DNA of 64,000 nt from Adineta vaga (GCA_021613535.1 CP075492.1:5332001-5396000); one strand, 5' to 3'; shown: positions 16,889-58,144, numbered from the stretch's first letter. Made by a program: numbers and translations. Notes: a model not told the origin generated them from the letters alone.

Positions 16889-18107
16889 CTATGTAGTTCG
16901 AGCGCGCCAACATTGATTTTCTCGTTTTATTTCCTTGATGAAATGTCTTGATTTACTTAAAATCAGCCGTCGCCAATAACTGAATTCAAGCTTTTCTAAC
17001 TGATAAATAGATCGTGTCTTAGCTTTATTTTTAGTTATTTCTTTCAGTCTAGCATATAGAAATTCTTCAGTAATCTCGTTTTCATTATTGATAACAATGA
17101 TCGGTAAATCAATATAGAGTGAATTTAATGTGGAATGCCATACAATGGGAATCACATCGAGATAAAGTGCTTCCCAAGTTCATGACAATCTAGACCATTA
17201 CCACGAGGAGAAAGCCAAAATGGATACTGACGATTACGAGCATAGATAGTTGGAAGACCAGAAATATTTACACCATCAGATTTATCAATACACAAAATAA
17301 ATTTAGTTGTTGTATTATTATTACACAAAGCCTTCCATACATGTGAACGAATTCCAGTGGGATCTGTTAATCGTTGAAAATTAATGAGCAAAAGTTTACT
17401 TTTAGGGCGGTCATCTAAACTATGCGATGTTCTATTATGAGTGAACGTTTGTTGTCGTTGTCGTTGTGCATTTCGAAGTGCATTGGCCATCTCATAACAA
17501 TTGATGCCTACAAGAACTAGGATGTGTTTTATGCTACCATGATTTCTATATTCTTACCAATGGGAATAGGAGTGAATTTGTTATTATCCGACAAATGTAT
17601 CTCGGAATTTTGACCGAACCAATGAATGATTTTTGAGTCATGCTTGTCCAAATAAGACAAATAGCGACTCGGTGATGACGCATCGCTTTGTCCCGTGATT
17701 AACACAAATTTATTTTGTAAGTATGGATAGACTTTGCTAAAGAATGCGTCAAGATAATCAGTTTTAACATAGATAATACTTCCAGCAACTAAACAAGATT
17801 TTATATGGTATCCTCTGGTTGTTGTCATTTCTATTCGTTCGTCAAATTCGTATGTGGGCCAGCCATAAATCCAGTCAGCCAGATTGCGAAAATTTTGCGG
17901 ACAAATAAACTCCGAATGATATGGTACAGTATGTGAACTATCGAATATTAGTTGATTCTCATTTATGATCGATTTATATGGGCATAAATGAGAACAATCA
18001 GGTGATCGATACACAAAAAGATAAAAACTAAGGATAATATGGTATGCACAGATAGTAAGAATCAATTTCATTTTAAGACTGATATGAAATTTCGGACACG
18101 AAATCAT
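16889..18107 (-). pseudogene. Exostosin/GT47-like glycosyltransferase-related type II membrane protein with a 1-nt frameshift
   Basis: N-terminal TM; IIYVKTDYL, FVLITGQSD, WFGQN, PIPIG; 50-nt intron 17557-17508; FWLSPRGNGLDCH[R]TWEALYLDVIPIV broken by a 1-nt deletion at ~17181. Confidence 0.75.
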
Positions 18108-19356
18108 TTCTTCGCTTTGAGAATTCTAGAATTTCTAGATGTAAAAAGTATTAATCAGAAAATCGAATTACAAGTTCAAAAAATACTTGTAGTATTCTCT
18201 CGACTGAAATGAGAATCATATGAAAAAAAATAGTTTGCGTGTGTTTGTGTCAGGGTTAAAGACCAAAGATGAAAAACACATTTCTTTTTATTAATATCTG
18301 GGGGTACGCTTGGATCATCATGTACTTTGAAATTGAGATAGAAAGGTGATTAAGCAGGTACTGGTTAAGTTTTGCTTGAGTCTTATCAATCGATGTCGTG
18401 AGAAAATTCAAGAGACAAAGATCTTTGGAGAGGCGCCGCATAATCTATAGTATGCGAAGGTATGCAGGCAATCGTTCTCCCTTTTTAGTTTCTCTTCGAT
18501 GATCGTAATGATAAAAGATCGGATAGGAGGTCCAATTATTCCTCTCAAAATTGAACTATGAGCAAAAGAAATACTAAGGAAACTCGGAAACGATCAGGCG
18601 TTTATAAAAAAGATTATCATATAACCAAACATTGAAATGACTCTGAAAAAACTTACGAGGGAACCTTTCCAACTGTCTAATCGCTTTTTAGATAAAGAGA
18701 GCGCTAGAAAGTAAAACCTATCATTTAAAGGTGTACCGATGTTCGACAGGCGTATATGTTCTCGTTTGTTTAAGATTCGAATTTACATTTTGGTAGAGCC
18801 GAAAGTCTTGATGTTTGAGAAGCTATCGAACGATACGATTCAGAGCGAAATGGTTACTTCATTAGAAATTTTACGTAACAAAGTGCATTGATTTTCCGTT
18901 AACGTGATGCTTTTTTTATAAAAATGTTCATTTGCAAAACAAAAGCTTTAGCTGAAATAGTGAGTAAATTTCGTTTTGTTAATCCTTCAGTCGCGAAGTC
19001 AAGCGAGTCATCGTCGACGAGCGTTATTTATTTCATTTCATGGGATTTTTGAAAAACTGTGTTCTCTCTCTTGCATAAAGAATCAATTCTTATAGGTTCA
19101 TATTCATACACCAATCAGAAGTGATGATTGCGAATATTCAGTCTTTTCTTTCAGTTGTGATCTTGCGCGAACATACCGATAAATTATAGTCCTATATAAA
19201 AGTCATTTGTGATTGCACAGATGCTGAAATATTTCTTTGATGAGGCTGGGGCTGAAGCCCTGCGGAATGCAGATAACTTGCCTGTCAGCGCAGGGTAGGT
19301 TACTAAAATGTCTCACCCTGCAGACCTCTAGCTGGGAGTAAAAGTACTAGTATTAT

Positions 19357-20694: not shown

Positions 20695-23600
20695 ATATTT
20701 CATTCATTCTGATTCAATTCAAGTTTTGTTTACTTTTCGCTTCGTTTTTCTCTCTCTCACTCGTTTGTGTGATCTAATCACTTTCTTTTTTCGTTCGTCT
20801 CAATACGTCACTCACGTAAGTAGTGATTACATATGCACATTCTCCATCTTCCACTTTTTCTCCTTCCATTCATCAGCAGACATATATTTGAACTCTTGCG
20901 ATTCTTTCTTTTTCATACGTTGTAATTCGCCGATCACAAACGCACGTATAAATATGGGATATTGTATAATTTCTATTTCTGATATTTTAATGGGATGGAT
21001 CTAGGTAAGATTTAGAATTTATCAGTGCATCGTTTATTTTTCATTTATTATTATTATTATTGTATTATCATGAATATGGGAGAACATCAAATGACATGTC
21101 ATTTATTCAACGAGATTATCTTATGGATGGATGTTCATTAAACCATATTCTATGTAAATAATTTGACATAAATGACTTCTAAAAGTTGGAATATTATTAT
21201 TTTGAATTCGACATGAACAATGATCATTATTTTCTATACGAACATGGGGCAGCACTAAAAAAGCGTGTAGACTAAAGGATTGTCTTTTATTTTTCTATGC
21301 ATATAATGTATTATGGTCATGCGCATCTATCATTTCATCCGTTCGATATATATATATATTATAGGAAATATGCACTAGTAATAGTACTATCATTACGATT
21401 TATATGGAAATGTTATTTTGATAGATGCACTAAATCGATGTGAAATACAAAAATAGACTCGCGATGTGCACATGGAATATTGGAAAATATTTTGTATATA
21501 TTTGTGACAAACATTTCTTTTTTTTAAGGTATTTATTCTAAATCAACGAACTGACTGATTTATATGCCATACAATATATTTACATTTATTTCATATGAAA
21601 TGATTGGGAATAACATATGAATAATGGAATAAATATGTTCATTGATTGTTAAGAACTCTAAGCTATCGACACACTATATTATGATGGATGAACTAACTAA
21701 CTAATTAGAATAATACAGACAGGATTTGCTTATTTATGAATGAATACTTTCCTTTATGTTTTTAGGACACTTTTTTCTGGGATTATCTATATTAAGGAAT
21801 TATTTAATGTTCACTTTTTATCAATATCATTTCTATCTATTTATTGATAGCGACAATTTTTATTTATGGGATAATTATGTTTAATATTATACATACTTTC
21901 ATATTTCATCGAACGAACATTATGTTTTTGGGGCGACTAAACATGAATAGTTGGAATCTAATTTTATTAGAATTATGAATAACAGTCGAAATATTATGGT
22001 TTGAAATAGATCTAAATAGATTTATTTCGACTCGGATTATTTTTTTTAGGAATTAATTATAGAAACAGATGAAACGCTTGTATCAATAGTACTTTTGAAT
22101 TCGCTTATTTTCAACGAATTATGGGACTTCTGTGCGTGCTATAGCGTTTTAAGGAATATATTATTTATGAAATATCTATGGTTAATGAAAGTAATACGAG
22201 CACTATTATGTATTTTGTTGTAATAAATAACCAAAATGTCCATTTATGAGCGTCAATCTTCTGGAGACTACGCGTCTGACGCTGCGAGACAATGTCGATA
22301 TTCTTTCTATTAGATCAAACAAATAAATTTCTTATATAATTTTCGCTTTTGATAGGGAACGTATAATTTTGAACAGTCGTTTGAATATTTCAACTATAAT
22401 AGCTTGATTAAGTATTTAGTATTTAGTATTTACATATTTACATGACACATGATAACTTTAAATGGCGTATAAACAAACGATAATGCATAACAAATGATTT
22501 AGTTATATTTCATCTGTAATTTTGAAGCAGCAATTTTATGTTTTATATTTAGATATTAGCCTAAGTGGATATGCTATAAACTTTCGAAGTTATTTTCATT
22601 TTTTACATTAGTAGAACATTTCATTCGTCTTATAGGTCAAAAAGGTAAGTGATTAGAAAAAGTTCAAAAGCAAAAATAGATTTGCTTAATTTCATTTGAA
22701 TAGACTATTTCAACGATGTTGTTTTCTTTTGTATGTTGAAAAGAAACTGATTGATAACCACGACTAGTCAGAAGTCATTTTTACTATTTGTTCTCAAGCT
22801 AACTATCCTGTGTCTTCATATTTCTTAGAGACATTAACTTGATTTGTGTCAAGAAAGTTTCTTACTACTCACTTTTTCGCACTATTTCTATCAATGAAAA
22901 TCTAGAAGACAACATAAGTATTTGTGAGTAACTAGTCTCGTTCTTCTTTTTTTCTACTTATGACTTCCATGCTCTCTGAGATGTATAGTACTAGAGTTTT
23001 AATTCAAATATTATTCGTAATTACTCGTTCAAATTGATAATTCTAGCCCATCAGATCTTTTCTAAAAATATAATTGTTTCTACTGCAACAATCATATGTA
23101 ATGCCATGTTGCATAGTTATATTCCACTGTATAATAAGTGCACTTAGACGAAGTGAGTTTCATCCATTTTCATATGACTCAAGTTTGGTTTATTTTTCTC
23201 TTGTGCTTTACATTTTATTTCTTTTATATGACCTAATCAGTGTCTTTTCTTCTCGTGCCTAGCAACATCATCAGTTGCAAGAGATGGTTGCATATGAACA
23301 TTCTCTTTCTCTCCTTGTTTTCATTTCATCATGAAGCACACATTTGAACTCTTACAATTCTTTCTTCTTCATATGTAATAATTCATCGATCACAAGTCTA
23401 CTACTGAATATTACATATTGCATAATTTTTTCTTTTTATACTTTAACAAAATAGATCTAAGTAAAATCGTGAGGTAATCATCTCTTCTACATTTATACAT
23501 CATTGCATCGACTATTTTTCATCTATTAAGCTTTATCATGGAAACATGGAAAACTATAAAATGATACAAAGAATCTATTCTATAAGATTATCGCTCGAAT

Positions 23601-24020
23601 GAACAATCATTGAGTAATGTCTTATATAATTTAATACAAATGACTGAAAAATGCTCGAGGATTCTTTTGGAGTTGATATAAGTAATCATCACTATTCTCT
23701 ATACTAACATATAATAATAAGAAGCAACTTGAAAAAAATGGCCATCTTTTATATTTATGTGTCTGTGTATCATGATCATTTGCAACTATTGTCTGTTAGT
23801 TTGATACATAGCACATGTAATTTGTACGAAAACATCAGAATTTACTTACTGGTGATAGTGTGATCGTTATCCTATATGAAAAATATTAGTTTGGTCATTT
23901 CACTATGCCTATGTAAAATATAAAACATGACTCACTAGGTGTACATGAAAAGTGAAAATTATTATTCGTATATGTTTGTGACAAACGTTTCCTTTTTTAG
24001 GTATTTATTCTAAATTAATA
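20695..24020. repeat. Two diverged direct copies (~20695-21560 and ~23115-24020) of a decayed, probably once-coding sequence
   Basis: Collinear shared blocks, e.g. gaactcttgcgattctttctttttcata / gaactcttacaattctttcttcttcata and tttgtgacaaac.tttc..ttttt.aggtatttattctaaat. Confidence 0.6.
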
Positions 24021-26305
24021 TATTAGTTTATACCTATAGCATAATTTGAATTTTCATTATGTGGGACTCTAGACACTTTATAGTATATTAAGTAAGTTTA
24101 TATCGAATTTGATGACATTTCCTTTATCGCTGTATATAATTTCTCAAGTATTGAATCATGTATGGCTTGAAAAGTGCTTTCTGATGTAGATTTACTATTA
24201 TACGGCCTTAAATCATTGGTTTTAGTAGATTCTATACAAGCATTTTTCTGTCATCTCCCTCTGACAATTCTATTCCATTTCTGCGTCGCTTTATATTTTC
24301 TTTAAAGCAAATAAATTATACCATAAGCTACAGCATGAAAAGAACTACGATCTGCAAAGTAAAGCTTACTTTATTTGTGTACTTGCTAGTTTCAAACGAA
24401 AGTGAAATTGTGTGCGACCGACTTTCGACGCTGCATAAATCTCTTTTTTTTCTATGTCAACGACACATTCCTTTTTCATATTTCATCGCTTCGGCAATTA
24501 ATATGCATGTCAAAAAATATACATCAAAAGATGCAGCGCAAAAACCTCTATAATTTACATAGAACTAGTTGTTCAAGTAAGAGGAAAGGAATTGTTCATC
24601 CTTGTCAAAAATCATTTTCTCGCAATGTTACGCATTGGTGTCATGAAATTTTGCTGTTTTGAAAACTGAAAAGCACATAACTCAAATACATTTTACACTG
24701 TAATGGTATAGCTTTTCACACTGCGTATTCTCCGGTATTTCGTTTCTCTTCGGAAAAGCAGATCAAGTGATATAAAGAGGAAATAAGAAAAAAATACTTT
24801 CAGAGCGTCGAAAATTGATTGCACATAATTTTCTCTTTTCTAAAAGCAAAAATTGCACAAATAAAATAGGCTTTTCCTTGTAGATTGTAGTTCATTTTAT
24901 AATGTATGTTGTGGTATATTCTAGATGTTTCAAACAAAATACAAAGCGATGTAAAAGTGGAATAAAAAACACATTTTTTTGTACGAGAGAACGTATTTGA
25001 TTTGATATGTAATTGGCATCCCTAACTTACTAACAATTATCACTAGAATTTCTCGGTTTCTGGTTCAAGCTATTTTACTATAAAATATGTCAGTCCTCTC
25101 TGACGTAGCATCAGATGCCACTTAAGACTATAAGAAGCATTATAGTATCGAGTTTTATACTCTATTATTTCCAAATTTCTTTCTACTGCTCTTACTCAAA
25201 ATTACTTATATTTGAGCTTGTCCATCGTTAGGTGAACCAGCGTGGCCAAAGTTGAAGTTCAGATTTTTCAAATCTATTTGGAATCAGTTTGTAGAGTATG
25301 TTTCGCTGTATAAGAATATGCGTCTTGCTTTGTCATTCTTTCTATTTAACGAAAGAACAGACATGCCAAACATTAATTACGAATTAGCACTATTATTATT
25401 TGTCTTGATAGTGAATACACAAAGGTTTTCATTAAACGTTCTACAGTGCTTTATGAAATAGCTAGAGTAGCAAAAGAATCAGTAATAAATGAGCCTTGTC
25501 CTGGCGTATCTAATAAATTATTATTTTCTTCCTCAGTTGAAATAGTCATCCTGCAAAACTTGGCCAAAATAGCGATAAGTGCGTGACCATTTAGAGGTTT
25601 TCTACACTTTGTCTCATTAATATGTGAAAGTTTTTTAAAGAATATTATCTATTTTTAAGTCATTTTTGATGGTCTGGGTGAGGGTGTGGGTGCTGCTAAG
25701 TAGTATTTTGACACCCACACTCTCAAAAGGTTCCCTCGTCAGACGTAGTGGTTTTGGTATAAATAAGAAATACTAGCGGAGATACTGGATTATGCTCGAA
25801 AATTTCTTATATTGCAGATAGAGTCATAAATCCTAACCGTACTAATATTTTTGCCGCTACCCGTTAAGTCAATAGTTCCACCATTCATACCAACGAAAAT
25901 ATCTTAGACTGAGGAAAAAATAGAAAAAACATGTGAATGGATTAAAGGTGTAGAACAAGAAAAGCTTCATTTTATACTTAATTTATGCTACCCCATCTCA
26001 ATCTGATCTTCCACGACGTCTGTATTCGTTCTAGTGAATAATTTCTCTCTATTCACGCCGATACTTTTACTCGGCAATCCTTCGATCATATAAAATCTGT
26101 TGTTAATCAAAGAAAACTTTAAATAGTGAATGTCAATGTGAGGTTGTTTTGAGGATGTGAATGTATGTGCTCGTTCATCATTATCCATGCCAATTTGATC
26201 ATACTCTCACTCACAACAAAAAATGCTCGACCGAATTCGATGGGCTGTGTAGCAATAGGTTGAAAACTGTTTCATTAGAATTCGACAGATCTCTACTTGA
26301 ATAGG

Positions 26306-26533
26306 TGTAACGAAATCAGTGAAAAGCGTCACATCCTTATACTAGTCCTTACTTTGCACTTTGCACTTTGTCCTTATTTTGTATTCTATCATTACAATCC
26401 TTTGTCCTTTTCTCTCTCAGCAGGGTATATAAGTGACTGTTTTGTGTGAGAGCTATGTGATATATGATATGAAGAGATAAAGAAAAGCGTATGTCCATCA
26501 ACACTGCAGCCTCTTCTATCAGAAATCGTCACA
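26306..26533 (+). mobile_element. Solo LTR (family A)
   Basis: TGTAACG...CGTCACA termini; internal TATATAA; 5-bp TSD atagg/gtagg; homologous to 38434-38652. Confidence 0.75.
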
Positions 26534-26767
26534 GTAGGTGAATAACTTTAGAATATGGATTACAGTTTTACTCACCGTAGTCCTTAATTATAATTACGGT
26601 AATCTATTTAATCATATTTAGCGTTGTATTTTAACCGATCTTCGCAAGTATATACATTGCTACGCATCTTGATAGTAATTTGCATATGGGCACATTCACC
26701 TTTGTGTCCGCAACCACTTGCTTCCACTTTTGACAAACAACCGTCAAAGGACATGCATTTTCATATG

Positions 26768-27766
26768 TTATGGAATGGGTATTTGAGTTAGTATGTCGCT
26801 AGTATCTCGAAGTACTGTCAATTGTTGACAAGATTTTTTTATTTCCGCTTCAAACCGTTCTGCCACCACATATCTCATTCCGCTCTTGCGTGGCATCACA
26901 TGAAAATTATGACCATAAGAAATGTCAGTGATACGTTCTACTTTGACCTGATTATCAATTTTTAACATAGCTGCATGAGCACATCCATCGCCAATGTATT
27001 CACGAATCATTAAATCATCGCGAACTAACTCATTGACGAAAGTTTGAACTCGTTTTGATTCGTGATACCATTTTAATCGAACTATAAAGAAATTATTGTA
27101 AATGCAGCTAGAGACTTCGGATATATCGTAAAGAAAATGTTTCAGAACAGGCTTCATTGGTGTGATTGGTTCCCAGTATTCAGCACGATAAACATAATCT
27201 AGTTTTTGCTTGTCTGTATATATAAAAAGATCCTTTTTAGTCACATCGGAGAAATACGAATCAGCATCCATTCTCATAAGATAATCATATTGACCACCAG
27301 TGATCGATGGGTGATAAAAGATATCATGTGTCCAAAATCGACACATCAGACGATAGCTAATTGGTTTGTTGGATCGTGATCTATTATTGGGTTGTATTGA
27401 TGTTTGAAGATCGGCAAGAGCAAATGAAATCTTTATTTCTGTATTATTCCTAACTGTACATGATACTATGCGTTGGCGCATGGCAGATGTAAAGCTGTTA
27501 TCATGAAAAATAATGATTGGATAGAATGAGTTATTTTTAATTGAATGAAACCTCACTACAGAATGGATCATATTAATGGTTAAGAAAACAGATCGATCAT
27601 CGCTACGGATAAGTGTCGCGATGACACCTCGCGGTTGATAATAATTATTCTCGGAAATGAAATCATAATCGTTTCTAAAAATACCGAAATATATAGTAGT
27701 AACAATAGTAGTAACTAAGCAGATCAGCATTTTCGGCGTAGAAACGGTTACATTATAACATTTCAT
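26768..27766 (-). CDS. GT15 (KRE2/MNT1-like) alpha-mannosyltransferase-related type II membrane protein, intronless
   Basis: TM anchor; YPIIIFHD; SYRLMCRFW; YDYLMRMDADSYF (DxD); CIYNNF; IGD motif. Confidence 0.8.
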   Translation of the reverse strand: MKCYNVTVSTPKMLICLVTTIVTTIYFGIFRNDYDFISENNYYQPRGVIATLIRSDDRSVFLTINMIHSVVRFHSIKNNSFYPIIIFHDNSFTSAMRQRIVSCTVRNNTEIKISFALADLQTSIQPNNRSRSNKPISYRLMCRFWTHDIFYHPSITGGQYDYLMRMDADSYFSDVTKKDLFIYTDKQKLDYVYRAEYWEPITPMKPVLKHFLYDISEVSSCIYNNFFIVRLKWYHESKRVQTFVNELVRDDLMIREYIGDGCAHAAMLKIDNQVKVERITDISYGHNFHVMPRKSGMRYVVAERFEAEIKKSCQQLTVLRDTSDILTQIPIP

Positions 27767-28220
27767 TATTGCTGTAACATGTTAATAGGAGAGCTATAAA
27801 GAGTTTGTTTATGCATTGTATTTAAAGTAATCAAATATATCGCGCACAATTCTTTTGAACTATAATTATGAAAAGTAAACAATATACATGTTTGACAAGT
27901 CCATTATCATCACAAAATAATTAAAATACGATACAGTTCTATAATGTGTCAATGTCAAACTATATCAGTGTCATAAAATGTACATTGAGGGCGTGGGTAT
28001 GGATAATAGTAGGTTTTGACTGGCTCAGTATGCACATCCTCAAGATACACACATTACTAAAAGCGTCTTTTAAACTATTTACAGGGAACTCAATGTCCCC
28101 GAAAATTCTTGTTGTAACAACAAATTGCTTGAGTAGCTCACCGCTTCTCACGGTGTAGATGTCTACTAAGCTATCTCACATAGCCACAATGTCATCACTT
28201 AGTAATACAATCCACGCGTA

Positions 28221-29053
28221 TCCAGGTCAGTCGTTCCGGCCTCCAGTATCAATAGAAAAAACCCGTAAAAGCTAGACTGTCCCAGAGGTTCCCAACCGTT
28301 TCCGTCCGGAAGGGCACACAGAAATCGAAATAGTATTCAGACCGTATTACGCCGTACCCGGATTCATTACCATTCCGCATAGATCCCGTACTTTGCAAAC
28401 GATCATATCTCTTCACCATGTCGAAAATAGGTTCAGATTTCGACAACAGAATTCTCAGGAAAACCACGTTCCCTGGTGAACGAAACTGTCGCTTTGAGAA
28501 CAACTCATTTAAGAAATTATAATAAAGAAATTTTTCATTGCTGAAAAATCTTGTTTTGAAAATTTTTTGGATCAGCACGTCTCCATCCTTTTCCGAGTGC
28601 CCGTATCTGTTGCGAAAATGAACAGATTTTTCCGAAAAAAGCTCCTAGTTTCCGGTAGGATACAATTGGAAGGACGCGGGGGAAATCCACCAACATTCAG
28701 CCGTTTCAGGGCCGAGATGGGTGTGCTGATAAGATGAATAGCCCGCTCGGTGATTCTCTATCGGTCAAGAATATGTGTCTGATGACCGTTCAACATTCAG
28801 GTCATGACCGATTGACCGATAGTAACTGCTCAGACATTGCATCTCTCATTCTTTCTAATCTATGCGTCTTCTCTAGTATATAAGCGCATGTTGTTTGTAA
28901 CTTGAGCAGAACTGGAGCAATGATGTAGTAAGAGGAACATCATACATCGAGGATAGCGGTAACGCTTCTCATCCAGCTTTTCATTGTTGATCAACAATAA
29001 AGATATACTGCAGTGGTAACGAAAGGTCTCTATCTAAATTTCGTTACAATGGG
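28221..29053. mobile_element. CCCAGG-terminus (CMC/EnSpm-like) MITE carrying a solo LTR in its right end
   Basis: ta|tccaggtc ... gagatggg|ta (2-bp TSD TA); degenerate termini. Confidence 0.5.
28722..29048 (+). mobile_element. Solo LTR (family B)
   Basis: TGT...TTACA termini; perfect 5-bp TSD ATGGG; internal TATATAA (~28877) and AATAAA (~28996). Confidence 0.8.
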
Positions 29054-29148
29054 TATATAGAGAGAGAGAAAGTAGCGCGGGAGACGACAATAGCGGGAGG
29101 GTACGCATAAGTGATTAGGAGAGATGATCATATATTGATATCACCACA

Positions 29149-29565
29149 CACTCTAAATAAAAAAGGTGTATTCCCAAACCCATCGAAAAGATTCTGTATA
29201 TTTCAAAAGCTTCAGAATACGTTGACAAATCGCAAGAAATGGTTTTCAAAATCTACGAAACCTTTTTAAGTTCCGTACAGCGAAAAAACGTTTCGTATTT
29301 GCTCACGAAACCTTAATGCTTTCGTATAAAACTACAGTGCTGAACCCCGAGGTTTCGTACTTTCTGACGGAACCTTTTTTTCGCTGCACAAAACTTAAAA
29401 AGGTTTCGTAGAAGATGGTTCGGAGCGTGTATCCACGGTCTGATCCTTTTAGGTTTCGTAAATTTTGAAAACCATCTTTTTCGATTTGTCAACGCATTCT
29501 GAAGCTTTTGAAATCTATGAAATCCTTTGATGGGTTCGGTCACGTTACCTTTTTTATTTAGGATG
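29149..29565. mobile_element. Palindromic CAC-terminus MITE (CMC/EnSpm-like)
   Basis: cactctaaataaaaaagg ... ccttttttatttaggatg; long internal inverted arms; 2-bp TSD CA. Confidence 0.75.
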
Positions 29566-29958
29566 CAGAGCGTTATATCTATAGCATTACAATCTTGAAA
29601 GTATGTGAGGGTGTGGGTGCGAGTATTTATTGTTTACCGCCAGCCATACCCATACCCGGATGCTTATCCTTATATTCACATACTGAAATATACACATTTA
29701 AATATGTGTCGCGAACGAAATCGAAATTTAGTTAAAACTAAAATTTCAGTTGTGACTGTACCAGGACTGTACAGAACTAAAACTGTCTTCCTATAATAAA
29801 AAGCAAGACCAAGAAAAAATAAATAAAAATATAACAAGCGTTCTACATCGGCATGAAAGGAATTTCCGAGATTTTAGAAAAGTCAAGTGATAAAGGATGT
29901 GATTGTTTTGGAGCTAGTATGAGAAAACAAACACAAAGAACACTGGTACTCACACTCA

Positions 29959-33933: not shown

Positions 33934-34502
33934 GACGTTTCGTTTTATTTAGTAGTCAACTCTGTAAAAAAGGTGGTGCCATAGGAAACTATAAAATGTT
34001 TTAGTGAGGATTCAGAACCTCTCAAGGTTTCATTCGTTTATTAACCCCTTGAATGTTATCGATGCCTATAGGCGTCAGAGAAATTTTTGTGAGAGAAATG
34101 AAAAAAAAATTCTATGTTGTTTGTTCCATAAATAATAAATTATTTCGAAGATCTCATTTCATTTCAAGAATTTTTATGTTCTTAGCAGTGCCTCTGAATT
34201 TATACTTGCCTGGCAGACAGAAAGTGTACCAGGTTCATGACATATATAAAGCGGGAATCAAAAGTTTAAGGCGCTTTTGTTTAGTCCATTTTCTACATCA
34301 AAAGTCTTTTCTTAGCGACATCTATATAACTATTTCGATAGCTTTCACAATGGGACATAAGATTAATATGCTGAGATCTTGGAAGGAATTATTTTTATTT
34401 ATTCAGAAAATTTTTTTTCATGTGATCAAAAGTTTAAGGCTTTTTTAAATGACCCCTTTGTCCTCTGAGGAACAAAAGCTACAGTATGTTTTTGACTATT
34501 AT

Positions 34503-37027: not shown

Positions 37028-37084
37028 ATTGTTTGTTTCTACTTATAAATATACTTCGATTTCTTTGAATTATATAATTTATTT

Positions 37085-42977: not shown

Positions 42978-42978
42978 T

Positions 42979-43340: not shown

Positions 43341-45559
43341 AAATACATGTCTGAAATAATTGGACTGTTATGTACGTAGTTCAGCATAATAACTAGACTT
43401 CAATGAAAGAAATACTATTTCCTAATTACATTTGGAGCTTATTGCGGTATAATTTGTCATGTGAACTCAAACTGAATAATGATTATGATCGTATGTGTAC
43501 CAAATAAAAGGGTAATCCTGAAATGTTGGTGAATACAAATAGTCATCGTACATGGTGATTACTACAATAATAAACAATATACGTGAGAGATAGCAATTTA
43601 TCTTTGAAATTCATTATAGTATTGTAAATTGATCCAGATGAAGAAATTCATTTCTTAACAACTAGGAACAAACTCAGTTCCAGCCAGAAATCACGAAGAA
43701 ATCAGTCAAAGTTACGGAAATCAAGCGAAATCATTATACCTAATGCATATCCCTCCCAAGATTTCATCTGACTCGTGCTGATTTTTATGATTAATCTTGA
43801 TTTCCGTGATATATTTTCGATTTCGTGATTTCCAATAACTACACCGCCTGACAGCGCGATTTTCCATTTGAAAGTCGATTTCTCTTATATCATCTGAAAT
43901 CTTTAGAAATTAGACAAATCAGAAAGTCAATTTGTCTTTCCCTGTTTCTGAACGAGAAAACATTACAAACCGTACCACACTATATTTTCCTCTTTTAAAA
44001 ATATTCAGAACGCGTAAATATCAGACAGAGAGGATTGCAGTGATCAAAAACGGTTCACAATCGACAGAATTCATCCGAAAACTTGCGAAATCCTGATAAA
44101 ATCATCAATATAAGCAGGCATCCTGAGAAGTCAGAATAATCTGGATTGGTTCATTCTTAAAAAAGGTACTATTTGTTTTTTATAATTAAATTGGCAAAAA
44201 ATGATTGGTTGGATACAAATGCACTTTTGTTTTCTTTCCGTTTTGTAGTTTATATACAGCTGTTTGATTCTTTCCTTAGCAATCTAAAGATCTTTTAGCT
44301 ACTTCACTTGCTATAGTTATTTGTTCTATTCGATAACTATTTAAACTATTGCACAGCTATTTAATCGATTGTACAGCTTTTTGAGTCATTTATTATTACG
44401 GCGATCTTTTACTTTAACAATCTAATCAACACACCAAACATATTCATCAAATATCGATGATCAAATTCACCTTCTGAATGTCTTTTTTCGTTGTCACATT
44501 CATAAAAAGGAGGAGTGCCAAAAAATATTTAGGAATAATACATATGTTTCTAAAAGCTAGCAGCAACTTTTAGGACAACCAAAACAAACCAATATTCCGA
44601 CTTATACACAGTTCGACATAAACGTGTTAGCCTGCTTCATACGTTTCTACCTCTGGATAGTTAATGTCAGAATATTATGGAATACGAATGAATTTTAGAA
44701 TTAATATAAACTCACATAAAATCCTATGAAACGACACCGCAATTGACTTATTTATGTTGAGCAGAGGGTGGCTGAGGAAAAAAACATTTACTCTATATAA
44801 TTCAATATTAAAAAGCTATGTAACTGAATAACACATTATTCGTTTTTCTTTTACATATTTCAATTAATATATAGCTATGAATAAAATATCTGGCTAAGAA
44901 AACAAAGAAAATGTTTGTTGCGAAAAATGAAAAGATAATATATATGATTAGAATCGATTTTTTTACAGATGTTATAAAAATAAATGCGGAAACTTCGGAT
45001 TTTATCCCAGAGTTATGTGTACTGCAAAAAGTGTATGGGAGAGATGGACCATTCTAGAATGTCTACGCATCAAAATTACCACGAGAAATTTTTCGATGAG
45101 CAAGATTTTTCATGTTGAGTTATGAATGAATTTTTGTATTGGAATCTATCGGAATAACGGTCATATGCAACCTCATGAATCTATAAAAGATCTATGATAG
45201 ATACACATATCAGCATTTTCATAATAGATCATCATAAATATCAATAGGTTTGGAGATCAGATTTTTCTCTCTTGATAGTCGTTCCGACTGGCTACAAAAC
45301 CAAGCATTTGGGAAGCTCCCAAATTGCAGATCATATGAAACGTATTTAGGCAATTCGGTGTTAAAATACAGTTTTTTGCGCATTTTGAGACCTTCTTTAA
45401 GCATTTTTTCATTAGGAAACTACGATTTGACTCAAAACCAATATCAGATTCAGAATCAGCGTTAAAAACTGAGTCGATTCATACATGTTTTAGATAATTT
45501 TGAGAGAAAAGGTTTTTTCAGAAAAACTCTGTATCCCCCTCAGGGATGGTCTGGTCAAA

Positions 45560-45753
45560 AATGACAATTTTTTCGATAACTCAGCCATTTCTTGAGAGAT
45601 CATTCTCATCTTCTAACTCGGCCGAGATACTGATGAGACAATTATGTGCACAAAGTTTCAGCTCAATCGAATGTAGTTGTGAAGAGTTATCGTGTAAACG
45701 GACGGACATATAGGCCGATTATAGTAGTGTACTCACTTTTAGAGTACACTAAA
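45560..45753 (+). mobile_element. Helentron/DINE-like non-autonomous element 3' end
   Basis: acggacggaca microsatellite followed by a terminal stem-loop agtgtactc-actttta-gagtacact and an A run. Confidence 0.4.
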
Positions 45754-45858
45754 AAGAGTGCTGGCACTTGTAAAATAGATCCATGTTAAACTTTTCCTAA
45801 AAAACCTTTCGAGAAATGGTTAGCACTAAATATTTTTCTATCCGAACGCTCAGTGGTT

Positions 45859-48166
45859 GGTATCCGTCAAGAATGTCCTTTAGAAAATGTCCTACGTTGT
45901 AAATGTTCTCTTTAGAAAATGTCTTTTAGAAATGGTCCTTTGTCGTTTAATCCTTTGAAAAAATGTCTTCCATTATTAAAATGTCCTTTAAGTATAAAAC
46001 AAAGAATTAATCGATGAGTAACAAAAATTAGGTATTTGTTTATTATAACGAGTGAATTACTGATTTACTTATCATTTGTCACAAAAAAAGAAAGTTGATG
46101 TAACAGCTCTTCGACTGTGATTTTGCCTTTATTGTAACGACTATATAATTCTTTAGTTCTTCGTTCGATAATCTTGGATTGAATTTTTTTTCACGAGGTG
46201 TCATTCCAGCATTTATTTGAGAAATTAAACTATGAACAGTATATACTTCGTTTTTGATCGAATCGATGAAGGACCAAATATTTGGATGGCTTCCCTGCAT
46301 TCTTCATTTAAATCTATTGTTATATCCTAAAATGTGTGACAGTTAATTGAAATGTTACGATCATTACTTTAGTTTTACGTACCTTCGGAGAAGTTATTTG
46401 TTTTATCACGAATGTCGAAAACATTCCACATCGAGATTTCGCGCAACCATTGACGTTCAAAATAAGTAAACACACATTTCAATTCATCACGTTCACCCTC
46501 ACTAAGTTCTTCGCCGAGATCAGCAAACAATGACAATATATGTTGCTCAGGAACTAACGCAAGTGCCATCATTCGTCGGATCACACTGCGAACCATAAGA
46601 TTCTCCAAGTAAGTTGATGGTAAACCATTGGATTGAATGTTTCGATACACCGCCTGGCAAAAGTGGAAGAAACAACCTTTTTGTACTGTTGCTTCTGTAA
46701 ATTACAAGGAAATGTTTTCAATTTGATCAATGAGACTTGAGAAAAAAGTCATACCGTAAGTGAGATTGCTCGTGAAATTCCTGGCTCAAAATCGGACATG
46801 ATTAAGTAAGGATTGAATTTTTTATTAATTTTGTGTGCTTCAGAAATTAAAACATGAAACATATATAAATACGTTGTTATTTTTCTATCTGGAAGTAATG
46901 CGAATACTACCGGCAAACCTAAAGTAATGAAGAATAATTCATTATATGAATTTATATTTATTCTATATTTAAATAAGTAGAAATAACTTACATGATCCAT
47001 GATGAATGGCTTGGATAATGTGCACTTGATCAAAATTGGGTGGAGACGTGGAAAAGGTTCCATCCATATAAAGTTTATCACTGTCAAAAAGGAATTTCAA
47101 TTGAAAATCTGATGACCACATGAGTAATCTTCCTTCAGGTCGCGTATATAATGAATCATTTATAGAAAATTGTGGATCGTAACTATCGTGCAATATAAGG
47201 CGATCTTTATTAAGATAATCATTTCTATATAAATCTGGAATATCAAAAGAGCAGGATTGTGGAATTGGAGGCATCATTGCTCGCCGATTATTCACCAAAT
47301 TATGACCTTAATGAAGTATATATGTATGTCATTATTATATAAACTCTTGATAGCTTACCAAGATTAAGAATATTTGGTAAAACAGCAAGAGCTTCACCAG
47401 TGAGTAGCCCTTGTCGTACTTCTTGTTCAGCAATTTGTTCTAAAGGTAATAACTCATTTTCAGCTCGTTTTCGCATTTTTTCTCTTAAGTTTCGTATTTC
47501 TAAAGCGGCTGGATTTGGTAAATGGGAGTGATCACTTTTATTCTTGGAGAACTTCACAAATCCATTATTCAGATTTGTATGTAAAATGACGTTGCAAAGT
47601 CGATTGGCACATCGCCAGAACTTCATAGTTTTTGCTTTATTGAAATCTTTGAATTGAAATTGAAAAGCATCAATTGTTAACATGGATTTTCGTTTATTTG
47701 ATGTTGTTTTAACGATTGAAGGTTTGGACGAAGACGATAATGAGGAAGAAGATGACGATGTCTCATCAATTATAACGAAATCATCCGTTTCCATTTAAAA
47801 ATATTCCGTTTTTGTTATCTTTAAATTATATCTCAATACAAACAATACGAGTACAATGACCATCTTTCTTTTGTTTTATCCCTTTCTTGAATATACAAGT
47901 GAATCCTCTATTCGGCTTAGGACACAAATTTAAATTGAATTACAGCGTCATCTGTGTTTTAGATACGCTTCATTCTAAATTCTCTTCGTTAAGCGAAAAG
48001 AACATTTTCAAATATCGGACCAATTCTTAGAAGACATTTTTCTCAAGGACATTTGGTTAAAAGACGTTTTCTAAAGGACAAAATATAAAAGACATTTTTT
48101 TCGAGGACCAAAATTTGAGGACATTTCGTCGAGGACATTTCCTAAAGGACATTCCTGCCATGATTC
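45859..48166 (-). mobile_element. Mutator-like element (MULE) with an intron-containing FLYWCH + MULE transposase pseudogene (47794 to ~46070)
   Basis: TIRs of tandem aatgtcct/aggacatt units; TSD cagtggtt/cagtgttt; FWRCANRLC..HSH, YMDGTFS, MSDFEPG, GCFFHFCQ, TNNFSEG; TGA and a frameshift in the last exon. Confidence 0.88.
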
Positions 48167-51645: not shown

Positions 51646-53568
51646 ATCTAGCTTTACGTATTAGTGTAAATTGTATACAAATATCTAGATTAACTTTCTA
51701 GTTAATAAGTATCATGGCTGATCAAGGTTCATAATGGTATTTCTTCAAAATAAATTGGTCGATCTTCCAGGTTCAATTATTTCATTTTTATCAATGTTCA
51801 TTGTTCGTGTATATCATTTATTTTGAATAAAAGTGAAAATAACGAGTACTTTCTGGTTTATTAAACTGCATTTAATGTTACCCAATACCTAATACTGTTT
51901 ATAAGATGAAAAAGAATACATTTTTTACAGAAAATTCAGAACATCTATAACTAGTAGAATGTACATGAGTATGAAATAATCATAACAAGAGATTTTGAAC
52001 AATATGAAATATAAATATACGATGTGATTTAATTTGTATCTTATAAGTCCATGTTTGTAATACTTTTAATATCAGTTCAAATGTCTTATGTTGTTTGTTG
52101 ATAATGATTGATAGGCGATCGAAACTTCCAAAAAAAGAAAATAAATTATATTTAAAATTATCTTGATCATATCTTTATATTTTATATAGTAGACTGTAGT
52201 AATCATTCGTATAGATGTCTGTAGAGATATTTTCGAGAGTAAATGTGGGCATGGGTGTGGTCATCAACAGGCCAGCAAAGGCATGAAACGGATAATTGCC
52301 CCCTGAAAACATTTTAAGAGAGTAAGGAAACTTTATTGCTGCCGACATTGCAAATGTTTTTTGGCCGATTATGCCTCTATCTGTAGTACTATAGAATCGT
52401 ATTCATGTATATCATGGTCTTTAAAAGAGTCTTCGAATGATATAAGACTTAGGTACAGAACAGCAAAGCCTAGTCCATGCCAAAGCGCGAAAAATTTAAG
52501 CAAAAACATTTTGATTTAAAAATGGCACATATCTACTATAAGGAGTATAGAATAATATTTTGTTTGAAACCAAAACTATTTTATTGCCATCCCCCTAGAA
52601 AACTCTCGCCCATCCGTCCATACTCGTGGCTTTTGAACAGAAAAAAAGATCTTCATTACATTCATACCATCAGCTTCGTTCATGCGTACTCCAGATGAAC
52701 CACTATAAATATGTAGATTTAGAGCGCCTTTCTCTTTAAAACAACAGTTTTCCGGGAAAATTTTGAAATCGAAATAAATGCATGAGAGATAGTGCTGATC
52801 TTAGATCTTGCAGAAGCGATAAACTCTTTTTATTCAATACGTCTTCCCTTACAAACTTTCGCATGATTTCTATAGTCGATTGTTCAAACAAAATACGGCT
52901 TTTGGTTCTTTTAGCTCAGTTTATGATAATTTAATTTCTTCACTAATATTTCCTCGTCTCGAACCTTTTAATATATTAGAATTCTTTGTCAGAAGAAGTT
53001 TTCGCAGATGCAGTGAACTACATAGGGTGTGGGTAAGTCTAGGTGGACGTTGGTACTACCTGCATCCAACACCCACACCTATCTGTAAGGATAGCGAGTG
53101 TCAATGGGATAGGTATCCATCATCTCATTTTCAATTCCATTACAGATTTCTAAGTTGAATTGACATGATCTCGATGCCATGACGTAATAATTAAATTATG
53201 TATTCCATTCGACATTTTGATTTTGTCTGAATAATGCGTTCATTGACATACCAGTCATTAATCAATAAAACTTACAGGAAGTGAATAAGAGGGAAAGGGT
53301 AATAAATATTCATTTCCAGAGAAAAGAAAGAGAGAACGAACATAAAACGTTTACGAATAAGGTAGGAAATACCATAGAGAAGGACGATCAATGTCGAATC
53401 TCAACATACTTGACCATTTCGTATGATAGTAATATATCCATCGCTACATTCACATTCTCATCTTCATTCTTTTACCAGAACATATACAAGGTATTATACG
53501 CAAGTCTTGTAGTTTGAAATGGACAACTATATTTTATTTTTTTCACTTTTTATTGTTCTGACTTAAAC

Positions 53569-56500
53569 ATGAGGTTGATTAAAGCAAAATATATTCTTGT
53601 GGTTAATGGGCTCTTTTTGTTCGGTAAGTAACATCATGAGTATTATCGAAAGTTGAACCTTAAAATCCAATAATATAATATTAGGGTTATTATGGTGGAC
53701 TGTGTCGAAAATCCCACAAACAAGTGAATCGGTTCAACGTACAAGCATCAATCCACCATTCTATCCAATGGGTTCTGGTGATCTTTCTCGTTTGGCTCAT
53801 GTTTATTTCCCAAAAAACAAAGTATTTCATGTCAACGGAGTCGCATACGATTTTTATTCGATATGGGAACTAGGCAAATCAGAGCCAGGTCAGCAATGGT
53901 TGACATTCCCGCTTCCAGGTGAAATAAATAATAAAAATATTCCTCCTCCCTGGCATCCGATTTGTTCAAGTGTCAATCTACCAATTCACATTTCCCCTTT
54001 GACCAAAACACGAATTGCATTTCTCGAACAAGTATATGTGATTAGTGACGAAGGGTTTGTTGATAGACATGAGCATTTGAAAAAAGTGTTTCACCGACAA
54101 GCAATTCCAGATAGCTCAATACATTGGGTATGGAAATGGAATCGTACAACATGTAATGCCAAAAACAACTTTGATGAAGTCTACAGAAAAAAGCTAAATA
54201 TGAAACCTGGTAAGTTGAAGTATTATTTTTTGATTATTCGTCAACGTTACACGTGAGACATAAGATATGCGATTATAAACTCTCAGATAATACACTTGCT
54301 AATATAGATAATTCAGAGCATCAACAATAAATTGCACTGAATTCAGGATGAGAGGATAGGGATGAACATTGGTGTAATGGTATCTCTCGCCCACAATGTC
54401 TCATATGTATCCATATTTCACCAACAAAATCAGAACATACTTTATTATATGTGATAAATAACAGGTCTCCAGCATTTATAGCTCTAAAATATCAGTATTA
54501 AGTTCTCCAAAATTATTTGCTCAATTCGTACTCGACTAAATAGCACTAATAATAAATCAGATTTTCCAAAGTCAAATAGAGTTGCTCACTCTTCGAAAAT
54601 GATCATCGTAAACCGAATAAAAAATACATAAAACTTAGAAACATCATTCGAAAAGCAGAACGAATCGGTTTCATTTTGAAATCAGAAATTCTAATAACAG
54701 AAGAAAATTTTTCTGTATTGAGTATGATACTTTTGGGTTCGGAATACCTTTGTCTAATTTTTGCGAATCACCTATTCGCAGTTAACAACATTATTGGGTT
54801 TGAAAACGGGAACCTCCAATCTCACAACGGCTTTTTGGTGGTTTAGGAAGAAGCTTGTTCAGCGTCGTCTCGCAGTTACAAAAAATATTCAGTTAGACAT
54901 GGAGCTGTGAGTGAGTTCGAACTTTCGAATTAATGCGGCGCATCTGCTTTCTCAGATCAATGATAATGCTTATTTTACCTAAAAGTCCTCGCGTTGAACG
55001 CGATAATTCGTAAAGTAACCGTTTTACTTGAATTTCGCTTGCGGTGGTCTATCATATTTCAATCTGAATTTGGAAAAAACGACTTTATTTAAGATCAGAA
55101 TGATCGGACTATGGCTACCAGAATTTAGCAATTATTACAATATCAGTTCTAGAACTAATGATTAACCATTTCCGTTACAAAGGAAGATTAAGACTAAAAG
55201 AAACTAGGATGATTTACGACACACGAAAGACTAAGAGAACTCAACATGTTTTCGATATTAATCGTTACTAAAATTCACTACTCTCAACATTGAAATTAAA
55301 AAAAGGGTTTTGCGGTAGTTAAGATGTCTAAAAATAGTTTTCTGCTCGTGACAAAATAAATACCGTCTAGAAGCTGTCGCACATAACTACAAAACTCGTA
55401 AAAAGGACTTCCCATCGCTTTTCAAATATCTCAGTGGTTTTGGATCAACTTACAAACTGAAGAAGGGCTTAGAACTGGTTGCAATATCGAAGCTCTTTTG
55501 TTCAGTGAAAGGTTTGTAGCCATAGTACTATAGAAGTTTTTGAGTAGAAGTAATGCTTGCGAGTGTGCGTAGTTTTTGTATAGCTTGGTAAAAAGAAACT
55601 GTAATAGTTGGACTTTGGAGCTAAGCGTTGATAGTAAAAAATGGAAGACTTTAACTATTGTATCAGCAATAACATTTCTACTTTAAGAAATTATATAGCA
55701 ATAGAGACGTGAACTATATGACAAAGAGAGCGATAGAAAACATCCTTGTTGGGTCATGTGAATACGTATCAATTAATAGATGAACATTTCTCATTCATTT
55801 TTAGATATCTGTATACAGAAATACTCTGGAAAAAGACGTAGTTTACCGAAATCTTCCTAAATGCTCTACATGATACATAGATTCGAAAAAACAAGTTTTC
55901 AGATTTTAAGAAAAGATTCTTTCAAGGTTTCGTAAATCTGAAAACCTATTTTTTCAAATCTGTGCATTATGGAGAGCATTTACGAAGAGTTCAGTAGAAT
56001 ACCTTTTTTTTTAGAGTGATCATCTGTGAAAGAAGCATTTATTCAAATATATATATGTTTTAGGAAACAAGAATTTTTTTGAAAACTATATCCCAGGTCG
56101 ATCAATCCGATACTCGGATCCGATCGGATCCCATGCCGGATTCTATCGGAATCCGATGATCCGACAATATCCTATCGGATTCCTGGTGACGGAATCACTT
56201 CGGATTCTGTCGGTTGCGGATCCTATCGGATCCAATACAAGATCCTATAGTTTCCAAAAAACGGATTTCGACGGATCCGATAGGTGGGCATAAGACCGTA
56301 ATAAAATATAGCTAAAAAGAACGCTCATAAAATATGCAGCTTCCGACGGAAATTTTACTGACGGAATCCAATACAGATCCGTCACCAGGAATCCGATAGG
56401 ATTTTGTAGGAACGTTGGATCCTATAGGGTCCTATCGGATCCAATATCGGATTTGTCGACCTGGGATCATGACAAGCTGATATTTAAATCAAGCTTCGTT

Positions 56501-58144
56501 TGTTACATAAAATCTATGAAATTTTTAAGTAAATGATTAATCTGTTGTTTGCATTCCAACCACTCAACTAATTCATACAGTGTCTCAAGCCTCCGTTAGT
56601 TCTTCTGGTCGGTCCGTATTCTTGATATATATATATATATATTGCTACACAATAAGAGAAAAGTGACAAGATGATGTATATACATAGAAGACATCTTTCG
56701 CAGATAGAATATGAGAATGAAGCAAGGGGAAAAAAGCGAAAAATCGGTACTGCAGTATACCCTTTGTACTCCCGCGATAAATTATGAGTATTCTTGAGAG
56801 GTTTTTCAGTATTTTCAAGTCCACCGGTGATTAGTGTTACAGTGCACCCGCTAGAGTACAATGCAAATAAACCAAGCGAATAGAAATGTTCAAATACTCC
56901 ATGATACTTCGAAACTGGAGTATTTTGGAGCATTTGAGGCTTTCTGCTCGCTAGTGTTAGTTACATTGTATTCCAGCGGGTGCACTGTAACACTGGTCAC
57001 TGGTGAACTTGAAAACACTAAGAAAAATTTCAAGGATACTGATAACTTACCGAGGGAGTACAAAGAGTATACTGGAGTACCGACTTTTCGCTTTTTCCAC
57101 CTTGGAATGAAGACAGGAGCAAAGAACGAAAATATAAAGCAAATAAATATAAAATAACAAACGAAGGCTAATAAGCTCTGTATTTTTTATTCCAGCCTAT
57201 TCTTTTGTGAACGTCATTAAGTTTTGGACATTAACACACCAGAAATGAACTTTGCATTTAATAAATCCACGCTATAATTAGAAGAAAACAGAATTGCCCG
57301 CTCGAAAATTCTCTTCCTATTAATTTTCTGAAGTTTTTTTTCAATGCGATTATACCGTAACGATTTATCATGGTTCGATTGCCTGCGGCTACAACTAAGT
57401 GACACATTTATATGTTAAGTAATTACGCTTATGATACTCATCTGCAAGGTATTTACAGCACAATTTTCATGTCATTTTTTTACTTGATGTGTAGGGTTTC
57501 ATCTTCCGGACAATCTCTGTCCAATTATCATGAAGCATGTTGAGGCATGGCATTATGTGGCTGAGAACCAAATTAAACTGGCATTAATCCTGGAGGATGA
57601 TCCACTCTTTGTACCATTTTTCAGGAAAAAGTTGGAGAGAGTTATTTACACAGCCATTCGAACAGGTGCTCTGCGCATTGATACAAATTGTTTAAATCTT
57701 AGTGAAAGTCGGACCATGAGAAACGACGAGTGGATTTACCAAGAACCAATGATAGTTATTGGAACATGCTTCGATTTTTACGATGAATCATTTAATAGTT
57801 CAGTTCCAGATCCGCAGCCATTACTTACGACACACAAGCTGCGTCCATCGCGTTGTGCCCATGCATATATGATTACAGCATGTAGCGCACGGGCTATGCT
57901 AAGAGAAATCGCTGCGAAACCAACAGAAATCGATACACCTGACTTTCTAATGAACGAATTGTTTCCTCGATCACATGTCCTTCAATCATTTTGGGCTGAT
58001 CCACCGCTTGTATACCAAGGCAATCGAGTCGATGATCTTGAGCAGTTACAAACTTTCAAAGAAACTAAATACCAACTGAAGGCAGAAAATAAAAGAAACT
58101 TAAAAAGCTTTTCCTCTTGGTTTTTTTCTAAAAGCCAATTATAA
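53569..58144 (+). CDS. GT25 family glycosyltransferase, type II membrane; 3 exons
   Basis: Exons 53569-53623, 53685-54209 and 57495-58144, with phase-1 junctions checked. TM ILVVNGLFLFGLLWW; QVYVIS..DRHE; KHVEAW; LILEDD; RCAHAYMIT..A; PPLVYQ. Confidence 0.82.
55822..56018. mobile_element. Palindromic CACTCT-type MITE in the GT25 intron
   Basis: tactct..aaatgctct / agagcattt..agagtg inverted arms. Confidence 0.55.
56092..56465. mobile_element. CCCAGG-terminus GGATCC-rich MITE in the GT25 intron
   Basis: at|cccaggtcga...tcgacctggg|at; 2-bp TSD AT. Confidence 0.88.
56723..57104. mobile_element. hAT-type palindromic MITE in the GT25 intron
   Basis: CAAGG...CCTTG termini; ~180-bp arms; perfect 8-bp TSD gaatgaag. 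Confidence 0.88.

Follow-up and report, generated by a model that had tools for sequence, protein, structure and literature searches.

The window analysed here is a stretch of 64,000 bp from the bdelloid rotifer Adineta vaga (GCA_021613535.1, CP075492.1; C3:5332001-5396000), and it contains the left part of an island of genes coding for glycan-modifying enzymes. The assembly consists of six pieces with 100.8 Mb in total. C3 is a piece 20,354,754 bp long, and the island is interstitial on it, 5.3 Mb in. The window is AT-rich and has G+C content of 28-40%. Five sets of open reading frames (ORFs) had been proposed in a sequence-only reading of this DNA as a cluster of foreign-type, membrane-anchored enzymes, and all five are present. 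They are listed below, with positions counted from the first base of the window.

16889-18107, minus strand: exostosin/RXYLT1-like ("GT47-like") gene; exon 1 17558-18107, intron of 50 nt 17508-17557, exon 2 16889-17507; signal anchor at residues 15-33

26768-27766, minus strand: GT15-like (Ktr/Kre2-type) glycosyltransferase; intact single-exon ORF of 332 aa with signal anchor

30703-33933, plus strand: tri-domain fusion enzyme; intact ORF of 1076 aa, single-copy in the genome

50347-51645, plus strand: DUF7870/FkbM-like putative methyltransferase; intact single-exon ORF of 432 aa with signal anchor

53569-58144, plus strand: GT25 glycosyltransferase gene; exons 53569-53623, 53685-54209, and 57495-58144, with GT..AG introns; PF01755 at 26.4 bits against a cut-off of 24

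The island extends past the downstream end of the window, from C3:5,348,889 to about C3:5,466,788, and is about 118 kb long. Eight families of glycan enzymes are represented there, namely exostosin/RXYLT1-like (broken), GT15-like, the tri-domain fusion, DUF7870/FkbM-like, GT25, FkbM, GT61, and GH125. Added to the five genes of the window are a true FkbM gene (C3:5397798-5398931, PF05050, E 1e-14), three GT61 genes, three GH125 genes, and two more GT15-like copies, one of them a pseudogene; the glycan theme is therefore stronger than had been claimed from the window. Two ORFs that are anchored or without an assigned family also lie downstream of the window. An anchored ORF of 235 aa (C3:5403736-5404440) gave only leads below 0.9 in the atlas search, and no Pfam match was found for an island ORF of 370 aa. 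The fusion, FkbM-like, GT25, and FkbM genes are four consecutive genes on the same strand. All glycan enzymes of the island have a single N-terminal hydrophobic helix, which in the five of the window follows a short basic tail, as the sequence-only reading had described. The predicted type II signal-anchor topology holds for the island enzymes, whose catalytic parts would accordingly face the lumen.

Animal genes border the island on both sides. On the left they code for an LDLa protein, two G-protein-coupled receptors, a proteasome subunit, and an FG-GAP protein, and on the right for prenyltransferase beta, CLAMP, a GMC oxidoreductase, AhpC-TSA_2, and Mlf1IP. The left boundary within the window is formed by two genes.

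13632-14123, plus strand: last exon of the proteasome alpha-subunit gene (PSMA5); PF00227, E 4e-35

14218-16740, plus strand: gene for a protein of 840 aa, single-copy in the genome, an ordinary animal gene

Glycan enzymes account for 8 of the 13 ORF families inside the island and for none of the 20 flanking ORFs (hypergeometric p about 9e-5). The co-location of non-homologous glycan enzymes in the island exceeds chance. The families are small in the genome as a whole, which has one locus of the fusion, about nine of GT15-like, six of FkbM-like, six to nine of GT47-like, five of GT25, about 13 of GT61, about 26 of FkbM, and about four of GH125. Their concentration in the island is therefore unusual. 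A permutation of family placement never reached eight families in 120 kb, also when the loci were restricted to 3% of all sequence in the genome, but it was rejected as evidence and is not relied on, because the families had been picked from the island and the test is circular. Outside the island, three cross-family pairs not more than 45 kb apart were found where about 1.6 would be expected, a difference without significance.

The fusion gene is the only self-contained pathway module in the island. In its product a tail MNKKH and a signal anchor (residues 6-24) are followed by a short-chain dehydrogenase/reductase (SDR) part of RmlD/epimerase-like type (about 56-310), a zinc-ribbon sugar 3-C-methyltransferase (about 357-780), and a GT-A glycosyltransferase part (about 810-1076). 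The Pfam matches are Epimerase at 65-272, Methyltransf_13 (zinc; PF08421, E 4e-15) at 368-429, Methyltransf_23 (PF13489) at 457-599, and Methyltransf_14 (PF08484) at 629-773. About 400 residues of the methyltransferase align end to end with solved 3-C-methyltransferases, with E 4e-44 for 4rv9 (phmmer, query residues 358-754) and about 1e-35 for KijD1 and TcaB9; the PDB matches 4rv9, 5t64, and 3ndi span E values of 4e-44 to 4e-35. The stretch FDTIYHEH is identical in the fusion and 4rv9. Residues Y566, H567, E568, and H569 of this stretch and Cys359/362/402/405 of the zinc ribbon are invariant in 12 diverse homologs; the Tyr, Glu, and His of this active-site motif are reportedly catalytic in TcaB9. 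The SDR part (window 30868-31632) has a weak likeness to RmlD (E 0.008), and its motif at residues 176-186 reads D-x-Y-x-x-S-M-x-x-R-E across the 12 homologs.

The C-terminal part scored 24.4 bits with Glyco_tranf_2_4 (residues 826-914), below the cut-off of 27.5, while the bacterial homolog of this part is above it with 28.8 bits. An AlphaFold2 (AF2) model of the last 282 residues (pLDDT 81) gave 218 matches in PDB at E<=0.001 in Foldseek, with GT-A enzymes on top; the best folds were GalS1 (E 9e-9), then ThuS/SunS and SpsA. According to the model, the C-terminal domain adopts a GT-A glycosyltransferase fold (GT2/GT92-like). By analogy with TylC3, TcaB9, and KijD1, the methyltransferase domain would add a methyl group at C-3 of a nucleoside diphosphate (NDP)-4-keto-6-deoxyhexose, the SDR domain would then reduce the 4-keto group, and the GT-A domain would transfer the resulting branched sugar to a glycoconjugate that is secreted or displayed at the surface. 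Both the substrates and this order of reactions are proposed from the likeness to those enzymes.

Full-length relatives of the fusion occur in many bdelloids with 54-74% identity. At 40-46% identity and over more than 90% of the length, they were found in Lotharella, Amorphochlora, Hemiselmis, Tetradesmus, and metagenome contigs. No non-bdelloid metazoan was among the 120 best matches. Contigs of giant-virus metagenome-assembled genomes (GVMAG) encode the homolog as one ORF of about 1000 aa, and at least 587 viral stretches encode relatives of the fusion. Bacteria have three neighbouring, overlapping ORFs for these functions, unfused but with the order kept. In a tree computed from the methyltransferase domain (52 rows, 420 columns), all eight sequences from bdelloids group in a single clade (SH-aLRT 99) that divides into two subclades, and Adineta and Rotaria are present in each. 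The bdelloid clade is placed among eukaryote (protist)-type and metagenome fusions; the bacteria and most viral contigs are in a separate clade (100). The fusion locus is 14 kb from the proteasome gene on the 20-Mb chromosome piece. Nested with support among non-metazoan sequences and situated beside animal genes, the fusion is, by its sequence relationships, horizontally acquired.

In view of its tree position and of the fused state in protists and giant viruses, the gene was acquired once, already fused, before the split of Adineta and Rotaria, and from a source of protist or virus type. The foreign origin proposed earlier for the C-methyltransferase gene agrees with the tree, but the bacterial type proposed with it does not, as a protist- or giant-virus-type fusion arrived in one piece. 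Assembly of the fusion from bacterial parts within the rotifer was also considered and is ruled out, since bacteria keep the parts separate and form a separate clade.

Two kinds of loci with relatives of the fusion have notable neighbours. In viral contigs of giant-virus type from IMG/VR (L082:6642-11024 and L068:3982-7953), the fusion is divergently oriented from an adjoining gene with collagen triple-helix repeats, and in these two contigs the substrate may be a glycosylated fibre protein. In Polynucleobacter sp. 73C-SIWE (L045:3631-10898), three flagellin genes and one with TPR repeats immediately precede the three-gene module, and a flagellar export gene is nearby; the locus resembles a flagellin-glycosylation island.

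Family labels of the other four genes are of unequal strength. Those of GT25 (PF01755) and GT15-like (by profile) given earlier stood, together with the domains of the fusion, while FkbM and GT47 are weakly supported labels, as no Pfam match to either was found in the window's genes. The GT25 introns are 61 nt and 3,285 nt long (the second at 54210-57494, carrying inverted repeats), and the exons are in frame across the GT..AG introns. A paralog (L002) has an intron of only 49 nt at the position of the long one and in the same phase (phase 1), and another paralog (L001) scores 31.5 bits on PF01755. The acidic DxD-type motif is in the stretch LILEDDPLF. The GT25 identity is confirmed at the level of sequence, and function would require splicing of the unusually long intron. 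The C-terminal part gave no match in PDB with phmmer; the GT25 and GT47-like models were searched exon by exon and not as joined proteins.

The GT15-like protein itself has no Pfam match, even at E<=10. A profile of 25 GT15-like sequences matches Ktr4 (7boo, 5a07) and Kre2 (1s4n) with E values from 1e-8 to 4e-5 over about 130-170 residues, and about one in three homologs has a precomputed PF01793 match. These profile matches support its identification as a distant GT15. The loci of this family in the genome include a copy with 95% identity at C3:5449451 and a pseudogene at C3:5427613. On another piece (C1:14898531-14912986; L008, L010), a GT15-like gene on the minus strand and an FkbM-like gene on the plus strand are 13 kb apart; the FkbM-like gene is in frame-shifted pieces, the intervening genes are unrelated, and the pairing is consistent with chance. 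In Rotaria socialis (L152:13939-16195), a model of 713 aa within a GT15-like tandem array joins GT15 and Branch (GT14) Pfam matches.

No PF05050 match was obtained for the FkbM-like protein, the gene is absent from the results of a genome-wide PF05050 scan, and hhalign gave a probability of 0.2% for its relation to the true FkbM of the island. Its AF2 model (pLDDT 76) has only Rossmann-level matches. The atlas fold search placed DUF7870/FkbM clusters at TM 0.36-0.54 (by matched model), VIA aligned 183 residues with the FkbM structure 2py6 (Z 7.2) amid Rossmann folds at Z 6-8, and Foldseek found no match in PDB at E<=0.001. Homologs occur in bdelloids, and some are named FkbM-domain proteins; the atlas lists rotifer clusters first, then a diatom cluster, then (streptophyte) DUF7870/FkbM clusters. 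The conserved stretches DxGSS, AFE, and KLDIDTPE resemble what we take to be FkbM motifs. The gene is tentatively designated DUF7870/FkbM-like.

In exon 2 of the GT47-like gene, the assembly lacks one base in the CHRTWEAL motif (between 17182 and 17181), which shifts the frame. Two paralogs (L003, L004) have CHRTWEALYL in a single frame. Because the frameshift falls in a conserved motif, the gene as assembled is probably a pseudogene, so that of the five enzymes announced in the window this one appears to be lost, while the others have open frames, with GT25 depending on splicing. Neither the pieces in the window nor the exons of the intact paralog have a Pfam match. Relatives found from the second exon of the intact paralog number 4,593, and the sampled ones score 27-29 bits on RXYLT1_C (cut-off 27) and 22-25 bits on Exostosin_GT47 (PF03016), below the cut-off of 33.4. 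The nearest named relatives are from an aphelid and a chytrid. The sequence matches may point to the GT47 family.

The DNA between the genes abounds in transposable elements (TEs) and repeats, and three elements were delimited in the window.

34242-38374: Tc1/mariner-like transposon; terminal inverted repeats of 208 nt, 97% complementary; decayed transposase; HTH_32 on the ORF 37085-37450

45876-48166, minus strand: MULE/FLYWCH transposon remnant; FLYWCH and MULE Pfam matches; a 92% copy on C5

63141-63710, between GT25 and the downstream FkbM gene: FLYWCH/MULE-like ORF, recognized by eye, with no Pfam match at E<=0.01

Many dispersed repeats are situated between the island genes, and the spacers consist of 3-16 kb of TEs. 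A repeat of about 780 bp (window 44978-45760) has more than 20 copies with 85-95% identity, mostly less than 2 Mb from the ends of chromosome pieces, and one of about 220 bp (window 26305-26535) has more than 30 copies. These elements agree with the view that only TEs and decayed DNA separate the genes, but the public annotation numbers about 10 gene models between the GT15-like and FkbM-like genes.

Part of the island was recently duplicated. Local blastn of the window (without 53001-54000) against C3:5396001-5496000 and a DNA search of the genome revealed a unit of about 22 kb that is present three times in tandem at C3:5413359-5465891 (L012-L016, L025-L026) with 96-99% identity. It carries an ORF of 159 aa, GT61 (PF04577), two ORFs without an assigned family, GH125 (PF06824), and a transposase of piggyBac type. 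A GT15-like gene is contained in two of the three; one of these genes is the copy 95% identical to the gene in the window, and the other is the pseudogene. In the window itself there is a further copy.

20698-29851: inverted partial copy of the 22-kb unit, 92-97% identical, containing the GT15-like gene

Between the two repeat arms is a stretch of about 48 kb with the fusion, FkbM-like, GT25, and FkbM genes. Recent segmental duplication inflates the gene count of the island in part.

The arrangement was then compared with those of other bdelloids, as conserved linkage had been expected for a working cluster. In A. ricciae, the locus L147 (CAJNOJ010000127.1, 8147-29366) is collinear with the left flank of the window, with 97% identity for the proteasome gene, 82% for the 840-aa gene, and 65% for the GT15-like gene. 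There, a gap of 186 bp separates the GT15-like gene from the 840-aa ortholog, at the place where A. vaga has the broken GT47-like gene and 8.6 kb of repeats inserted, and no further island gene was found in the 10 kb after it. Within 10 kb on either side (less at contig ends) of the fusion genes of Rotaria, A. ricciae, A. steineri, and two metagenome contigs, no island family was found. The FkbM-like gene of Rotaria stands alone among animal genes (claudin, WGG, CUB), and the GT15-like genes there are in tandem arrays. All five families of the window occur in both Adineta and Rotaria. Across the bdelloids compared, the linkage of the island is not conserved, and the clustering is, on present evidence, specific to the A. 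vaga lineage. In two other bdelloid-type contigs, a GT61 gene is 2-4 kb away from the fusion gene. Its position was tried as a case of conserved linkage and rejected, as it has no significant similarity to the GT61 of the island.

The apparent donors also differ by gene: they are of protist or algal type for the fusion, aphelid or chytrid for GT47-like, and first diatom and then streptophyte DUF7870 clusters for FkbM-like. When 13 island proteins were compared by tblastn with 115 bacterial and viral loci having a fusion homolog (8 kb on either side), only weak exostosin-like matches were obtained, on two viral contigs. The viral neighbours on two contigs that were scanned are collagen-like genes, and no glycosyltransferases were seen among them. 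As the donors are different and the bacterial and viral fusion loci are without the other families, a single co-transfer is therefore unlikely.

It seems probable, with some reservation, that rearrangement and duplication in TE-rich DNA gave rise, in this lineage alone, to an island of secretory-pathway glycan enzymes whose ancient acquisition was from several donors. The families, all of non-animal type, would have been acquired long ago from several different donors and brought together in the A. vaga lineage by rearrangement, TE activity, and recent segmental duplication, and they would not have been transferred or conserved as one pathway cluster. The enzymes next to the fusion probably act on glycans of the compartment in which it works, where they would transfer mannosyl or other residues, add O-methyl groups, and trim mannose. 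That they share one common product is conjectural, and a single pathway is unproven.

Several observations weigh against this explanation. The theme of the island is strikingly pure, and accretion alone leaves the uniformity unexplained. The comparison with other bdelloids may have missed linked genes: the GT15-like ortholog of A. steineri is 685 bp from a contig end and the fusion ortholog is on a separate contig of 16.5 kb, and their adjacency is possible; the fusion gene found in A. ricciae belongs to the other paralog subclade, and the true ortholog may be lost or unsampled; and flanks of 10 kb are too short for the spacings of 15-25 kb in A. vaga. In the fusion SDR, the lysine of the canonical YxxxK is also missing. 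Across the family the consensus reads YxxSMxxR, with an invariant Arg three residues on, which suggests a non-canonical active site and makes the predicted SDR activity uncertain.

A genuine biosynthetic cluster, assembled and kept by selection for co-inheritance or co-regulation and making one methylated or branched surface or secreted glycan, is a rather doubtful alternative. It would account for the eight families in about 118 kb against none in the 20 flanking ORFs, for the secretory signal anchor on every enzyme, and for the four consecutive genes on one strand, with the fusion as a plausible first committed step; the GT61 genes close to the fusion in the two other contigs could be counted in its favour as well, but they are without detectable similarity to the island GT61. 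Against it, the island genes are not linked at the collinear locus of A. ricciae or near the Rotaria relatives, one member is frameshifted, TEs fill the spacers, the apparent donors differ, and the repeated members are explained by recent duplications. Still more specific, and unlikely, is the proposal that A. vaga assembled de novo, from genes of several microbes, a cluster for a secreted or surface glycan in which the fusion, working in the secretory pathway, makes and transfers a 3-C-methyl-branched deoxyhexose, and GT15/GT25/GT61-type transferases, FkbM-type O-methyltransferases, and a GH125 mannosidase extend and trim the glycan.

It was also considered whether the region is a TE-rich sink of decaying foreign genes, most of which no longer function. 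Decay is evident in the frameshifted GT47-like gene and the GT15-like pseudogene at C3:5427613, in one truncated GT61 copy, in GH125 copies with internal stops or a TE insertion, and in the GT25 gene, which is split by 3.3 kb of repeats. On the other side, the ORFs of the fusion, GT15-like, FkbM-like, and FkbM genes and of two GT61 copies are uninterrupted and keep conserved motifs, GT25 retains canonical splice sites and reading frame, and the fusion is single-copy with both bdelloid paralog clades preserved. Several public runs, small and about the size of transcriptomes, also contain the whole fusion ORF in their contigs; none of these runs is recorded as RNA. A sink of this kind is considered decidedly improbable.

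Very improbable is the remnant of one donor block, such as giant-virus or protist glycosylation genes inserted once and later invaded by TEs, for which the abundance of the fused gene in giant-virus-type contigs and the weak exostosin-like matches a few kb from it speak, but against which stand the lack of any other island family around the 115 fusion homologs, viral neighbours without glycosyltransferases on the scanned contigs, dispersed paralogs of each family in Adineta and Rotaria that indicate old acquisitions, nearest relatives that vary by gene, a GT15-like gene alone at the syntenic A. ricciae site, and an island in which no viral hallmark genes were seen.

The island of anciently acquired enzymes from several donors resembles known systems in part only. 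With the bacterial enzymes TylC3, TcaB9, and KijD1, the fusion has in common the Cys4 zinc ribbon, the class I S-adenosylmethionine (SAM) domain, Methyltransf_14, and FDTIYHEH, but in A. vaga the methyltransferase is the middle domain of a protein of 1076 aa, with the SDR before it, GT-A after it, a signal anchor, and a place on an animal chromosome. The bacterial SDR, C-methyltransferase, and Glyco_tranf_2_4 module of Polynucleobacter has the same functions in the same order with about 30-36% identity; unlike the bdelloid and protist fusions, it consists of separate overlapping ORFs without signal anchors and is in its own clade. Fusions of protists and giant-virus MAGs share the tri-domain architecture with bdelloids, and many have N-terminal hydrophobic segments. 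The bdelloid fusions differ in forming their own clade with two old paralog lineages, and no island family was found beside the viral homologs.

TE-rich regions of bdelloids reportedly concentrate horizontally acquired genes, as is said to have been described by Gladyshev, Meselson and Arkhipova in 2008 and by Flot et al. in 2013. The island likewise has foreign-type genes amid transposons, and carbohydrate-active enzymes (CAZymes) are a major class in those regions as well; it differs from them in being interstitial, in its sharp borders with animal genes, and in its uniform theme. With eukaryotic biosynthetic gene clusters it shares the co-location of non-homologous enzymes of one theme, but not conserved linkage. 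The CAZyme repertoire of A. vaga is very large, with 623 glycoside hydrolases and 412 glycosyltransferases (quoted in PMC4498783). Bdelloids carry horizontally acquired nonribosomal peptide synthetase and polyketide synthase genes, and no glycosyltransferase or methyltransferase clusters are described in the same source (PMC11258130). No earlier description of the fusion or of the island was found in the literature searched.

The fusion is a "Rosetta stone" that links genes which are separate in bacterial loci of flagellin-glycosylation type and fused in giant viruses and protists, and bdelloids have kept it in two old paralog lineages. C-methyl-branched sugars are, as far as known, products of bacterial secondary metabolism and components of surface polysaccharides, and we know of no such chemistry in animals. 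If the fusion enzyme is active as proposed, an animal would have gained a sugar chemistry hitherto not known in animals. As the island shows, a single interstitial region that is TE-rich, prone to duplication, and sharply bordered can collect foreign glycan enzymes. Its joint function is unproven, and it is a useful test case for the question of whether animals can assemble metabolic gene clusters out of horizontally acquired genes.

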